DNA of 63,523 nt, filler included, from Choristocarpus tenellus KU-1152 (lineage: Eukaryota > Protista > Phaeophyceae), in assembly GCA_964200185.2 (NCBI GenBank). It is 10 parts of 10 records of this genome, joined end to end, with 100 filler letters (N's around TTAATTAATTAA, not from the genome) between each part and the next. Parts side by side here need not be neighbours in the genome. Positions count along the whole stretch, not along the records: positions 12,299 to 19,046 come from CAXNAD020007435.1; positions 19,147 to 27,141 come from CAXNAD020005287.1; 8 more parts are not named here. One strand, written 5' to 3'. How positions within the stretch are numbered: position 1 is the first letter of the stretch; each line of letters begins with the position of its first letter. This document shows positions 12,299-19,400 of this stretch, in pieces. The notes beneath the pieces are model-generated. The model ran no database searches and was not told where the DNA came from. It saw nothing but the letters and a program-made list of their open reading frames with translations. The position numbers and the translations under genes were made by a program.

Positions 12299-12346
12299 TT
12301 GACCCAATGGGACAGCCGCCACCCCCCCCCCCGAATACTTTGAGCC
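12299..12346 (-). mobile_element. MITE family B terminus (truncated by the gap)
   Basis: GGACAGCCGCCACCCCC...GAATACTTTGAGCC is the reverse complement of the family B left end GGCTCAAAGTATCTGGG...GGTGGCGGCTGTCC. Confidence 0.75.
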
Positions 12347-15300
12347 TGTGTCCTACGAGAGTCAGACAAGAGTTGTTCGAGGAGCTTGATGAGGAAAGGT
12401 GATAGATTATCACTGCATGGACGCGGTGTATGATGATTCCTGAACCGATCCTTGGGTAAGGCCTGCATTCCTCCTCGAACTCTCCTGAGGGCCTTAGCGA
12501 GAGCATCAGCGAAGAAACAGAATTATTAGACACTGTGGGGGCTGAGTTATCTGCTGATGTCCCTTAAAAAATGGGGCCTTTGGTCCCCGAGCTTCTTGTG
12601 AATGCGTTCCATGGTTTTGATGCAATCCTGGTGGTAGCTCATGTCTAGGTTGCGAGTGGTCCTTTCTCCCTCTCGTCTGCCTAATTCAGACTGATTCAAC
12701 CCTACTTGATCACGTAGCTCATTAATCTCGCTTTTGAGCTGTGCTTGTTGTGAAACCTGAATTGAATGAATCGTGCTTTCGTATGCAATGGCTGGTTGTG
12801 ATGAAGGGGTGTCATGGTGCCGCAAACCACTGGTGGATTTATTATGTTACAACTGAAGTCATGACTTGCTCAGTCAGAAGGTGGATGATGTGTATTCGAT
12901 GTTCTTCCTTGGTACACTCAAAGGAAGAAATGCATGTTCTCAGAACAGGTTTGTTACCTTGGCGGACAAGGGTTTCTGTGGATGACTTAACTGTGAATCT
13001 ATGGCATCCAGGTGTGCATCAGGCACACTTAACGCAGAGTGAGCATGATGGATTATGAGGGGGAAATATCAATCAAGAAAAAATACTAAACACATCAAAT
13101 ATGCGAGTGGCAACTTCTTGTGTGAAGTTGAAGCAAGGGGAAACCAAAGAAGAAACAAGAAGACAAACTTGAACCAATGTCTGAGGGAACTGACGTGGCA
13201 CATAGTATGCCTGTATATGTGATAGGTGGCGACTGTTCTTATGTTTCCTATGTATTTTGGTGTTCTGAAGGTGATTGATGATGTTTTGAGGAGGAGCTAT
13301 TGAGGTAAGTGAAAATAGCAACCATTATTGTAATGGACAAGTCAACATTCAATGTGGACAAACCATACTGTATCGTATCACAATAAATCAAATGAGTAGC
13401 CTATGTTTTAACATTTCTAACTCTCTGTAACGACGTATCGTGACCATGCTTTCTCTCTGCGTGGTCCTTGGTGGGACAAAGCTGTTTGATGAGGGATCTT
13501 TGGCTCGGCTGCAAAGTCCAAGCGAACGGCATCTGTGCTCCTCTCTCTTCCTCCGTGAGTCTTGTTTGGACTGCTTGTTTCTGGACCTCGACCTGAAACG
13601 GGATCTGCTACTGGTGGAGACGGAATTGAACACGTTCTATAGACCTGCTTATGTGTTCAGTTGAGTTGCCAGGGCAGGTGCGGGAATTTTTGCGAGGTGT
13701 GATGCTGGGCCGGTATCTCTCCGAATCATTGATTCCCTGCTGACTCTGCGCGCCAGGTATGTCTGTGCTTCCTGGGCGACTCTGTGGGCCAGGCATATCT
13801 GCAGACCTGAGTTAATAAGAAAACAAAATGTGACGCAGAAATTGGGAATGTTAGTTTATGGATGGCTAGAAATAGCTACCTAAGCAATGTCCATAACATT
13901 GGGGTCCAAGATCCCCTACTTCCGATCATAGGTGTATGGCGCCCCCTTTGGAGTCACAGATTCCATCATGCTACTCTTTTCCTCCAGGTAGGAAGGGGTA
14001 GACGATGGAGCGCTCCAGTACCATCGAAAGAGACCACGAAACCATGAAGAAAGAAAATCTAGGCCATAGTAGGGAGCTACCAAGAATCCATGTGATGAGG
14101 TGAATAATGAGTATTTTCTCCAGTTTGAAAGAGATATGGTAGGACCTCCGTGATATGCATGCTCCAAAGCTTACCTCTACAAAATATATGGCTCAAGTGC
14201 ACAAGCCTATAGATGGCGTTGATGCCTGTACAGGTCTCCTGAGGAACACTGACGGCCTAAGATCCCAGTAAGAATGGTGAACATCAGGTCAGCAGATGAA
14301 GGTACACTCTCATTCAATGTAAGTGCACAACATATAAATACGAGTGAAGACAAGGACTATCTTCATCCATCCAATATATTCTTATCGAATTTACAGAAGC
14401 CATAATACCTCTGAAAACCGTTGCTTTATTCTTAAGATACAGATCTCACACTGTAACTACAGCATATCGGACTTCCCCCAGTTGGGGGTTCCGTGCGCAC
14501 GTTTACTGCTCGGACTGGTTAGAGCGCGAGAAGAAATAGTTGTGTTATTTGCCTGTAACATCTATACCCAATTCCTCCGTACTACTTCCTGCCCCAGTTG
14601 CACCCAACCCTTGCTACTTTCCGTCCACCCCATCGATAACTACCCTGGGTCCCAGTAGTTGGTCGAATTACTCCAGAAAGACCTCGAGTCTCCACCTCTC
14701 CTTGCACTTAGCTCCTGCCCACTAAATCTTGCCCCAGTCCTACCCAGTCCGCCCTGCCTCCAGCCAAACCCAATGGAACAACAGTGGATCTCTCTAATGT
14801 TTCCGAACGTACACTACGGAAGTCTTGGACCTCCATCTCCCTTTCCTCCGTATGTGGGATCTTGTGCGCCCATCATAGACATTCTCATTGCCCGGCCCCT
14901 ATCCTACTAGAATGTAAGGAATGTAACATAACTAGGGTTATACTTGCCTGTGTGTGCTAATACAAGCATATATAACACACTTTCGTGTACGTTTATCAAT
15001 AGTTCGGTAGAATAAAAAGTATCGATAATGGGTGGCAAGGTAGGGGGGAAGGGGCAGGAGGCCACAGCAGGAAAGGGGTTGTCAAATCCCCCATCTACAA
15101 CGGATAGTATCTGTCACAACACAAGTACCTCTATCTAGGCGTGTCATGTGCTTTAAGCTGGAGACACCAGGTAGATGGCCAAGGAGGGACTTCTTAGACT
15201 CTTGGGATGCTTCCCTAGCTCCCACCCTGGTGTGCAGGACTAAGCAAGGTTGGAGGCACAGGAAGGCAGCAGTATAGCATAGCTGTTAGTAAAATAGTTA

Positions 15301-15557
15301 ATAAATATAGAAAAACACCTTTCACATTTGTGACAACTGTTACTTTTTCAAGAGTTGTACTGACGTTTGAATGGTTTTTCATTGGTTTTTCCCCTGACAC
15401 ATCTGTAAAATATCAGAGGGCATAATAATATAAATCACGAATGACTAAAGATTGACTCATCATACCGTTATGTACGCTACTATGTTGTATTGTACCCAGT
15501 TGTATATAGACGTGCAGGAAACTGTGTTATATGCTTGTATCAGCACACACAGTTTAG

Positions 15558-15816
15558 GAGTGAAAGTATCTTAGACGGTACGAGTTTTCCCCTGTTTGTC
15601 CGTTTGGTGCTTGACTTCCCACAGGTATTTTATGGCATTTTTCCTACTCTAAAATGTTTCGGAGTAGGCAAAATATATACATTATGAAAAGGTGTGTCCG
15701 GAACAAGGATAGTAACACTTCCTAATAAACACGATAGCCAAAATTACATCCAAATCAGAACATTGGATTTTTGCCCCCAAATAGACCCGCCTCTACCCTC
15801 TAAGATACTTTGATTC
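15558..15816 (-). mobile_element. MITE family A copy (reverse orientation)
   Basis: GAGTGAAAGTATCTTAGACGGTA ... TACCCTCTAAGATACTTTGATTC; no clear TSD. Confidence 0.9.
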
Positions 15817-16688
15817 GTAAGTGTGGCACTAATTATGGGACAAGGCACATGTTCGATTAAACTCTTCCAACTCTATCGGACAGTTACGGTAAAATATGTA
15901 TGGAGTAACGGAACAATCAATTAGTGGTTGAGTTATCAGAACCTTTTACTAGTGATTAGTTGAATGAGAAAAATTCTCATATAAAAGGAAATATTTCTGA
16001 TTTTATGGGGCTTTGCATGCTCCACCTAAATTTAATCAATCACTCTACAGACACCAAGCAATCTCGCTGGATTTATCACCTTTACACTCTTTGATGATTT
16101 TGGGGATACTTTAACAGCACAATATTCAGTTTTTAGTCCGATTTCCCCCACCACCTCCTCAGTGCAAGAGGCTATTTGATTCCCTGTGATCACCCTCCGC
16201 CTTGTACCATCCGCGCTCCGTGCCATTGATCTCCTAGCTCTAGGCTGAGTCCCTATCTCTACACGACCTCTTCCTATACTTCTTCACGAAGGCAAAAGAA
16301 ATGAATATAAGTACTGTGTGGGCGGTTGGAAGGCCAAGAAAGTGTTTGTGTTACTATTGGGTTGCAGACATATTTGTCCTTACTGTACCAACCAGAATTG
16401 CCCATACCCACAGAACAGAGACACATGTACTCTACGCATGCGTTCACCACTTCCAGTTATCACCTACTTGGGTCAAGCCAAATATTCAAGTTCCTAGATG
16501 TACGAAATGCTATCCACTGCTCCTGAGCCTCTGTTTATTATTGTCATTGCAACCGATCCTCCGGCATACTTGACTGCAGTGCACCCAACTGCCGTATAAT
16601 TCCTTTCTAACCCAGAGACTGCTCCTGCCACCTAACCCGTGGGTAAGAGCGTTGAAGGTTATTTTGAGTAGTGCTGTTATCTCACCTA

Positions 16689-17127
16689 GGCTCAAAGTAT
16701 CTGGGAGGGGTGGCGGCTATCCAATTGGGGTCAATTTTTTCATGCCGCGATTATTGGGTTATTTTGTTGCATACGTCGGATGGATACCGTAAATGCACCT
16801 TTGTGCCAAAGTATCTTAGAGGGTACAGCCGCGTCCATTTGGGGCCACAATCCAATGTTGTGATTTTGATGTAATTTTGGCTATCGTGTTTGTTAGGAAG
16901 TGTCAATATCCTTGTTCCGGACATATCTTTTCATAACGTAGACGTTATACCTACTCCAAAATATTTTCGAGTGGGAAAATGTCATAAAAAACCCGAGATA
17001 AGCCAAGCCCCAAATGGACAAACAGGGCAAAACTCTCTCCCTCTAAGATACTTTCACTCTTTCCTGATTTTGGTTCAAATGGACACCCTGGTGTAGACCC
17101 CCTCCTCCGTCCCAGATACTTTGGGGC
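16689..17127 (+). mobile_element. MITE family B copy (GGCTCAAAGTATCTGGG...CCCAGATACTTTGGGGC), TSD CCTA, containing a family A insertion
   Basis: TIRs are present with CCTA on both flanks. Removing 16803-17059 restores the sequence of the uninterrupted copy at 27664-27840 (TGCACTTTTCCTG.TTTTGGTTCAAATGGACAC). Confidence 0.85.
16803..17059 (+). mobile_element. MITE family A copy nested inside family B
   Basis: GTGCCAAAGTATCTTAGAGGGTA ... CCCTCTAAGATACTTTCACTC; duplicated TTT at the target. Confidence 0.9.
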
Positions 17128-18751
17128 CCTAGATATTCCTTCTACCGACACACATTCTTCCGTGTTGATATGTCTCCTGCTATAAATGACCCCAACCCTT
17201 TTATGTCTCAAGTACCCCCATACTTCACAAACACAGGCCTTGCCTATCCTCTTCCCCCTACCCTGGGAAGTCTTATGTCTTGATTCCGCAGCTATGCTGC
17301 TCGTGTCCACCTCTGACTTCCCCCTCCCACTAGTTTGCTCTGTCAGTCTCCTTTCTGGGGTAACCTAAACAGACATACATCAATCGCTGAAGGAAAAAAC
17401 GCCGGGAAAGAACTCATAGGACCTGCGAAAATCCATCTCCTATCACTACTCACACATCCCTACATATTCCACACCTGCACTAGCCCTAGCCTCCAGATGA
17501 ACATCCGTAAGTGATGGAGGTATTATACGGTCTGAGAATCCAACATACTCACTATCAGGTTCTACCACTCCACGCTTAGTCTACAACAAGAACAGCATTC
17601 CAAAGTCCCCGACTACAAACACCCTTGTTGTACAATGAAATCTTGGCAGCTCCACAATAATCTACAGGGATCTACGAGGATTTTGCCAATCACTATCAGC
17701 ATTCTCACCTCGGGCTCCCACTTTCGTTCCGGCATATTGGGCCCTGCATATTTCTCTCTTTTGACAATTCCTGAACACCACCTACTGGTCGCCGCCCTAA
17801 TCCTTGCGTCTTGTGTAGCTGTACTGTCGGAGGAGTTCCTTGTGATGTGTCCTCTATTGCCTTCTACAATTGCGCCCCTTTCAACGAACATGCACCACTG
17901 AGATTTTCACACCCAAATTACCCTCGATAATTTTTCTTTGCTCATACTACGTCTTGGATTCCAAGCCTTAGGATTATCTATACACTTGCGAGTAATCTCT
18001 ATATCCTATCCAAATCCGAAAGGCCAGGACTGCATGGTCTTCTCAAGCACGCCTCCACTTTCTGCACACCTTCCCACCCCTTCCCAAGTGAGGTCTCCCC
18101 TGGTCGAGCCACCTCCACCTCCCAATGTCAAACTGTTGTACTTGAACCTCCTACAGATCTTCTTTCCTATCGTCAGTCGAAACAAGAATAAATGCTGCCA
18201 ATAGGTTACATCATCGACATTACAACGGTTTCTCAGAGGAAGCATTTAGGATCAGATCTTCCAGGTTGTATCCTTTGATTGGGTCAGCTAGGTCGATATG
18301 TACTTGTCATAAATATGCCCTAAGCTCCACCTTCTCACTACAACCATTCTAGCATCACCAAGTTCCTTAAAGTGTTTAGGTCTGATGGGTTAACCCTAAG
18401 GAAGAAGGACTGCGGCATAGTAGCCCAAAGGCAGTGGCTACCAATAATGAGTTGAATAACATGTAAATACAGACTGTAACAATATGGGTGTAATCAGTGA
18501 TACAAACAATGTACTAGACAATCAACGGTCGAAATTACGCAGCCCTACTCCGTCAAATCCATGACAGATATGCCAATGGATGGCAAGATTTGTTACAAGG
18601 AAGCAATCTAGAAGTTAACACGTCGAGAAGAGATCGTTGAAACCTGAATCGAATGCATCGTACATGTAAGCAATATGCGTAGAGTACTAGCGATGAGGAA
18701 TCATGGTGTTGCAAAGCACCGATGAGTGATATGCATAGTCTATGTTATGGA

Positions 18752-18783
18752 TAGGGTTAGGGTTAGGGTTAGGGTTAGGTTAG
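18752..18783 (+). repeat. Interstitial telomeric repeat (TTAGGG)n, ~5 units
   Basis: TAGGG TTAGGG TTAGGG TTAGGG TTAGG TTAG. Confidence 0.9.
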
Positions 18784-18786
18784 AAT

Positions 18787-18969
18787 AAATTTTGAACCTT
18801 CATTTTTTCCAATCCATATACCAAGAAGCTCCTTCTTGCCCTCCATATTGACAGCTACTGTCAAATACACAGCTTTACTGATAACAGTATGACTATCCCT
18901 AGCCCTTACATGATTGGATTCTAAATATAATATCGGATACACCTCATCTAAAGCTCTATTTTGCCATCT
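18787..18969 (-). pseudogene. Bacterial IS256-family (Mutator-type DDE) transposase fragment
   Basis: Translates to RWQNRALDEVYPILYLESNHVRARDSHTVISKAVYLTVAVNMEGKKELLGIWIGKNEGSKF. This matches the IS256 block WQNRPL..VYP..YLD...VK.R....V..KAVY.A.G.N..G.KE.LG.W....E.A.FW. The first catalytic D appears as E and the fragment is truncated at both ends. Confidence 0.9.
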
Positions 18970-19400
18970 GGACTTTTTCAGCTTGGAATCGACAAGACCT
19001 CTTTTATTTGCTATATCCAAGCCGTTTAGCTTTCCCAAAGCCCAGTNNNNNNNNNNNNNNNNNNNNNNNNNNNNNNNNNNNNNNNNNNNNTTAATTAATT
19101 AANNNNNNNNNNNNNNNNNNNNNNNNNNNNNNNNNNNNNNNNNNNNGGGGGAGGGTTGTCACGTGCTTAGATTGTACCATTTGAGCACACTGTTGGATTT
19201 GATTGTTGTTGTCGTGATCCTGTTTGTGGAATTGGACTTGGTGTGACCTTGAGTTAGAAACTGCCTTTGTCTCTGCAGTGAAGACACTTCTGTTGGTTAT
19301 GGTCTGTATCACACCACTTGAAACTACATTGCCAGGGCGCCTGCCTGTGTGCCTCAAGTTGATAACTTTGTGCCTGCCTGACCGCATAAATGCATGCAAG

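Follow-up and report, generated by a model that had tools for sequence, protein, structure and literature searches.

An unplaced 6748-bp contig of Choristocarpus tenellus KU-1152 (CAXNAD020007435.1, assembly GCA_964200185.2) carries a telomeric-repeat tract exactly at the boundary between eukaryote-like DNA and bacterial transposase sequence. Our preferred reading, to which we give a probability of about 0.45, is that DNA of a Megaera-related member of the Rickettsiales was end-joined to a host end carrying a very short telomerase-made tract. An in vivo junction is somewhat likelier than a chimeric contig end, and its chances stand a little above even when a telomerase-made and a pre-existing tract are taken together. 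The contig is present in full at positions 12299–19046 of the window, by which we mean the whole 63,523-nucleotide stretch that was analysed. Its bacterial DNA, at least 260 bp, is confined to the last 260 bp. A literature search by accession returned no publication for the assembly, the contig or the runs. The features discussed below are collected in Table 1.

Table 1. Features of the junction region, in window coordinates
Feature	Positions	Strand	Basis and remarks
Very high-copy dispersed host repeat, one copy	18634–18750	+	Abuts the telomeric tract; Logan depth, direct repeat, alignments
Telomeric-repeat tract	18751–18783	+	ATAGGG (18751–18756), TTAGGG ×3 (18757–18774), TTAGG (18775–18779), TTAG (18780–18783); ~33 bp
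Filler AAT	18784–18786		3 nt, outside both the telomeric repeat and the IS256 gene
IS256-family (Mutator-type) transposase gene fragment, internal, 185 bp	18787–18971	−	Pfam PF00872; tblastn; both ends truncated
IS256/IS3 junction	18961–18973		TTGCCATCTGG (18961–18971) common to both parents with a 1-nt gap; AC (18972–18973) junctional
IS3-family transposase gene fragment	18974–19046	−	Identity to extant copies 73/73; cut off by the contig end
Accidental open frame, 87 codons + ILT + stop inside the telomeric tract	18775–19044	−	In-frame IS3–IS256 fusion

The telomeric tract and its host flank

Tandem Repeats Finder places a period-6 array at 18744–18783, and (TTAGGG)3 has a single site in the 6748-bp piece and 0 matches in 200 shuffles. 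The G-rich strand of the tract runs 5′ to 3′ away from the host flank and toward the bacterial piece, which is the polarity of a chromosome end. In form, the tract is a short, near-perfect TTAGGG array at an internal novel junction, as is characteristic of interstitial telomeric sequences of telomerase-assisted repair. In the alignment with intact IS256 genes, the Rickettsiaceae copies read TGG past AAATTT, whereas the window reads ATT and then C-strand repeats; filler is thus present at the host/bacterial junction and extended homology is absent. The addition of a telomere onto the bacterial fragment was also considered and is rejected on polarity, as the C-rich strand follows the bacterial DNA in the 5′ to 3′ direction. 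An earlier note on this DNA had described three nucleotides joining the IS256 block to (TTAGGG)~5, the orientation of the G-rich strand from host flank to bacterial piece, and the continuation of the tract into host-like DNA of the same contig. All three descriptions agree with what we find.

The left flank is eukaryote-like, with very high-copy dispersed repeats and matching contigs from three runs of one organism. No Pfam family was found among its ten longest host-side ORFs, and the Rfam and tRNA scans of this flank were empty. No part of the contig resembles human DNA. The Logan contigs of the organism all end at 18663–18665, within the dispersed repeat that abuts the tract, where the summed depth rises from tens to thousands (two to three orders of magnitude). 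A diverged copy of this repeat (~70% similar), at ~12748–12860, runs on past the equivalent point into unrelated sequence and has no TTAGGG tail. Because this copy continues past the point at which the tract starts, the tract interrupts a repeat copy and does not mark the natural end of the element, which argues for a break at this site. At the corresponding point, a further copy from this organism has a TAGG-like motif (loose end at 18728), which might possibly have offered telomerase a seed.

Several further observations concern the composition of the contig. Two copies of a ~255-nt element (15558–15812 and 16807–17059), 83–86% alike, lie in inverted orientation ~1 kb apart. The summed k-mer depth of this element is 10^5–10^6 in the organism's runs, against tens for unique DNA, which points to a SINE/MITE-like family of very many copies; the element has no tRNA or Rfam match. 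The first 49 bases of the contig (12299–12347) are an inverted copy (82%) of 16688–16734, the start of the highest-depth repeat of the piece, so the contig begins in a high-copy repeat, as it ends in a multi-copy IS3. The contig ends reach 49 and 73 nt into these repeats, a comparison aimed at a fixed assembly k-mer. Moreover, while the left part (13385–15347) is matched by contigs with 0 mismatches, the contigs from the organism's runs over 17098–18665 differ by 1–2% and are 3–4 times deeper than in the left part. In run X3, the stretch 17098–18665 is a single 1569-nt contig and most of the left part is missing. A low-copy element, either duplicated or transcribed, could account for this stretch.

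A mosaic of two insertion-sequence fragments

The IS256 piece matches the Pfam family Transposase_mut (PF00872) with an E-value of 1.4e-14 and 54 bits against a cut-off of 21, over profile positions 150–210 of 379. It corresponds approximately to residues 196–256 of a 440-aa Rickettsiaceae transposase, so that ~61 of 440 codons are present; an intact 440-aa ORF (L001, 2455–3777) served as the reference. At its tract-proximal end, the homology stops after ...NEGSKF, immediately before the W of the conserved FW that is present in all relatives. A full-length IS256 element with terminal inverted repeats is not present, and the homology stops at 18787 and at 18971. The piece also lacks the complete DDE catalytic triad: its first Asp is replaced by Glu, and the truncation at 18787 has removed the regions of the second Asp and of the Glu.

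In tblastn searches of plasmids, the top hits of the IS256 piece, at 74% identity over residues 25–86 of the frame, were Ca. Megaera polyxenophila plasmids and Rickettsia endosymbiont plasmids. When prokaryotes were scanned at one genome for each species, 113 relatives were returned, the best of which were uncultured Rickettsiaceae (79% and 77% amino-acid identity) and a Ca. Megaera genome with over 50 copies (76–77%). As the nucleotide identity to these Rickettsiaceae genomes is just 74–77%, none of those compared is the donor. A much closer copy is found in a marine-metagenome contig that is 93% identical over 18789–18971 (13 of 183 nt differ) and in which the intact gene continues on both sides. 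As judged from these closest relatives, the donor lineage would be Ca. Megaera and its allies (Rickettsiaceae), which are intracellular. The 1.58-Mb Ca. Megaera sp. genome OZ245887.1 has this IS256 type in over 50 copies (L003–L054); the ORF of one of them (L003) is only 197 aa long, and many of the copies may be broken.

The minus-strand frame that starts at 19044 stays open for 87 codons and extends up to the contig end. All protein matches to this fused frame begin at residue 24–26, and its first 24 residues had no match among 1.84 billion representatives in a profile-free search, from which a second element was suspected there. In the same search, relatives of the fused product reached at most 68% identity. 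The metagenome contig that matches the IS256 piece diverges from the window at 18971, while another metagenome contig fits 18974–19046 perfectly; 18972–19046 had no match in 79 Rickettsiaceae loci. An exact-word scan of JGI metagenomes located a 24-mer from 18974–19046 in contig Ga0316197_10129257, whose 394-aa ORF includes the window peptide. The Pfam domains HTH_Tnp_1, HTH_21 and rve identify this protein as an IS3-family transposase, and the window holds ~24 codons of it, approximately residues 103–126 of the OrfAB-type protein. By blastn, the nucleotide identity of the fragment extends to eight contigs, namely the JGI contig and seven others, and the same 394-aa protein occurs on 20 contigs (ENA, Logan and JGI) from marine and other metagenome assemblies. 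Plasmids of Ca. Megaera polyxenophila carry copies with 89.6% identity to this protein.

Two of the longer IS3-bearing contigs also encode F-type conjugation genes, of which TraH is closest to Megaera (50%). In these contigs (L082, ENA ERZ25039483 contig_22374; L083, ENA ERZ794996 NODE_67), the IS3 copy lies amid IS21, IS240, DDE_3 and DDE_5 transposases and HU genes, together with a MobA/MobL relaxase with a Toprim primase and a full F-type tra block (TraG, H, F, N, U and TrbC). Such a layout is reminiscent of a Rickettsiales amplified genetic element, here in what would be a marine relative of Megaera. A Logan contig of SRR23867507 has a truncated Transposase_mut ORF of 264 aa and, starting 27 nt after its end on the same strand, the IS3 ORF. 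This arrangement is an IS3 inserted into an IS256 copy, with the family order opposite to that of the window's fusion, and it places both IS families in a single bacterium.

The bacterial part of the contig is therefore a mosaic, in which IS3 codons ~103–126 are fused to IS256 codons ~196–256. The fusion point carries an 11-nt microhomology, and blastn matches to the eight IS3-bearing contigs reach into 18961–18971. The IS256 parent sequence at this point was taken from the loose end of the marine-metagenome contig, which translates as VTDGVIEEV upstream of RWQNR. The junction word was found in 0 of 89 loci, the window's own contig excepted, and the IS3-bearing contigs compared contain no IS256 homologue. 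The fused 89-aa product has no exact database record; the gene call on record at this place (P0151, 65 aa) stands alone in its cluster in the protein collection and comes only from the window's own contig. The 87-codon frame is a chance in-frame fusion and not a gene. With no terminal inverted repeats, complete DDE triad or target duplication, the contig has only internal fragments of IS3 and IS256, and these are relics, not elements. The fusion is most likely a microhomology-mediated deletion scar, probably formed in an IS-rich bacterial genome, and it could predate any transfer.

The two fragments differ in their state of preservation. In the IS256 piece, the motif YLDCIH of nine of nine relatives reads YLESNH, which changes the catalytic Asp to Glu, and where all nine relatives have YPILYLDCIHVKARDNH, the window has YPILYLESNHVRARDSH. 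The dN between this piece and the three nearest genomes is 0.115–0.12, against 0.04–0.05 among those genomes; as synonymous sites are saturated against all relatives, only the dN excess is usable from the dN/dS comparison. Collectively, the lost invariant residues and the dN excess indicate relaxed constraint, and the IS256 piece reads as a pseudogene at the sequence level. The decay could have taken place inside the bacterium as well as in the host, since dead IS copies abound in Rickettsiales genomes. The IS3 fragment shows zero changes from extant copies and thus no post-transfer decay.

At 18914, 18917 and 18919, contigs of two of the organism's runs and of the metagenome carry the letters that restore YLDCIH, and over 18914–18919 the Logan k-mer contigs of the organism's runs show only the intact-type letters. 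This intact-type variant indicates that a related and apparently live IS was co-sequenced with the host. The window's piece can be distinguished from such co-resident copies by these three letters and by the 13 of 183 nt that separate it from the nearest copy.

With respect to the bacterial piece, the earlier note had recognised an AT-rich IS256 block of ~185 bp, truncated just before the conserved FW and with the catalytic D reading E, and these features hold; the composition is like that of bacterial contigs (GC 30–38%). Its guess of a Rickettsiales-type copy was also correct, as the closest IS256 relatives are Rickettsiaceae (77–79% amino-acid identity), and the IS3 piece is likewise Megaera-related. 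The note had proposed a donor analysis of 18787–19046 as one unit; the Rickettsiaceae affinity stands, but IS256 covers 18787–18971 only. Its reading of the substitutions as decay after transfer is retained as to the loss of invariant residues and not as to when they were lost, given that decay within the bacterium would look the same and that the IS3 part is unchanged.

Origin of the junction

Under the preferred reading, the IS3–IS256 fusion would have pre-existed as a deletion scar in an IS-ridden bacterial genome, whose owner would have lived in or with the host. A host break would have occurred within the dispersed repeat, beside a TAGGG-like seed, and telomerase would have added a few repeats. 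Before a functional telomere was established, this end would have been ligated to a bacterial fragment by non-homologous end-joining, which left the 3 filler bases. We infer end-joining of this kind because filler without extended homology is typical of it. A symbiont source is plausible because the putative donor belongs to an intracellular lineage of the Rickettsiales and much of a genome of this kind consists of IS copies. The insert itself is functionless, a scar. In its fuller form, this account has a marine eukaryote taking up Megaera-like DNA into its nucleus, at a chromosome break where healing by telomerase was already under way; so stated, it is tentative and falls somewhat short of even odds.

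An in vivo origin is favoured because the boundary coincides with the distal edge of the 33-bp tract, where a random in vitro chimera would be very improbable, because the tract is unique and far beyond chance, because its polarity suits a host end extended by telomerase, because the 3-nt filler comes without extended homology, and because the insert differs from the co-sequenced IS256 variant. A boundary at a telomeric tract is a prediction of telomerase-assisted break repair (PMC2246262, PMC7215372, PMC8537989). The evidence on the junction itself comes from Logan k-mer contigs, not reads, with 18741–18788 skipped as a tandem repeat. These contigs neither span nor contradict the junction, the dispersed repeat breaking them at 18663–18665. 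Since the right-hand 1.5 kb of host sequence is 1–2% off the major, deeper variant in the same runs, this contig represents a minor copy, whose private k-mers are dropped in contig building; this also accounts for the intact-type IS256 variant being the only one visible. IS-related sequence is present in all three of the organism's runs, at a depth of the same order as host single-copy DNA. Overall, the read-type evidence on the junction is neutral.

The most serious rival, well short of even odds though a real prospect, is a chimeric contig end, in which a ligation or amplification chimera of the library, or the assembler, joined host DNA to DNA of a co-sequenced Megaera-like symbiont that already carried the IS3–IS256 scar. 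Such an artefact would explain why the contig is short and unplaced and has bacterial sequence only at its extreme end, and it fits the minor-copy status of the right-hand host sequence. Both contig ends lie in repeats, which implies that the assembly graph is tangled here. Also counting against capture, no contig is listed across the skipped stretch 18741–18788, the fused product is on no other contig and its 65-aa call is unique in the protein collection, and extant copies match the IS3 part at 100%. The organism's runs contain IS3 sequence as well as the intact-type IS256 variant, so a live bacterium or other copies were available for chimera formation. However, a random chimera would need its breakpoint precisely on the distal edge of the tract, its partners share no sequence by which assembly or template switching could have joined them, and 33 bp is below any usual assembly overlap. 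In addition, the window's IS256 copy is ~7% off the variant in the organism's runs. The earlier note had named an identical intact IS in a co-sequenced bacterium as an observation that would speak against capture; the intact-type copy comes near to this but is only ~93% identical. That note's central proposal, bacterial DNA caught at a telomerase-extended break, is upheld as to the bacterial origin, and polarity, filler and lost residues fit in vivo end-joining, while the organism's contigs stop at 18663–18665.

A real junction could also have formed at a TTAGGG tract that was already in place, as an older interstitial sequence or a repeat tail, with bacterial DNA inserted later at this fragile site. 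The tract does continue directly from a high-copy dispersed repeat, of which another copy has a TAGG-like motif at the same position, and the tract ends in two degenerate units (TTAGG, TTAG), a feature of aged interstitial tracts. Nevertheless, this version is improbable: the three central units are perfect, the diverged copy at 12748–12860 has no such tail, and beyond the insert the contig has no host sequence that would mark an interstitial site. Finally, the PF00872/MULE families include eukaryotic elements, which would allow the transposase piece to be a fragment of a native Mutator-like (MULE) transposon. This candidate is effectively refuted by best matches that are all Rickettsiaceae (74–79% amino-acid and 74–77% nucleotide identity), by the adjoining 73 bp identical to a bacterial IS3 that lies amid Rickettsiales-type conjugation genes, and by an AT-rich composition like that of the bacterial contigs.

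Significance and comparison with known systems

If the junction is real, it ties symbiont-to-host transfer and telomerase-assisted break repair together in one molecule at single-base resolution. The donor would also be unusual, as nuclear transfers are little documented for the Megaera-like Rickettsiaceae of aquatic hosts. If the preferred reading is true, abortive telomere healing followed by end-joining would be a route of symbiont-to-host transfer outside bdelloid rotifers. If the junction is a chimera, it is a useful warning that 260 bp of symbiont IS debris at the tip of a contig can escape decontamination, and the 87-codon "transposase" ORF there arose by chance from pieces of two different IS.

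In mammals, interstitial tracts made by telomerase have been documented where breaks were repaired (PMC2246262, PMC7215372, PMC8537989). Similar to these, the window has a few exact TTAGGG units at a novel junction, interrupting otherwise unrelated sequence (PMC2246262, PMC7215372, PMC8537989). In those cases, host sequence resumes beyond the tract and the empty orthologous site is known; in contrast, the far side here is bacterial, the contig ends after 260 bp, and the comparison is with a ~70%-similar paralogous copy of the repeat. No flank derived from telomerase RNA was seen at the window's junction.

The bacterial side belongs to the same IS256 and IS3 families as the elements on plasmids and chromosomes of Rickettsiaceae (Ca. 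Megaera, Rickettsia/Tisiphia), at 77–79% amino-acid identity for IS256 and 89.6% for the IS3 protein. Unlike those elements, the pieces here are internal fragments only.

Insertions of endosymbiont DNA in host nuclei are known, for example the Wolbachia-to-host transfers called nuwts. As in nuwts, a fragment from an intracellular member of the Rickettsiales lies beside host nuclear-type DNA and consists of non-functional mobile-element debris. The present case differs from nuwts in its putative donor, a Megaera-related marine lineage, in the telomeric tract at the junction, and in that the integration is putative and known from the contig alone.

In the subtelomeres of bdelloid rotifers, foreign genes and a bacterial IS5-like element occur near short internal telomeric stretches, a pattern read as repeated erosion, healing and capture at chromosome ends. 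Here, the repeat unit and the organism are different, and a single short contig lends no support to a subtelomeric position or to multiple events. What this contig has in common with bdelloid subtelomeres is the association of bacterial IS-type DNA with short stretches of telomeric repeats.
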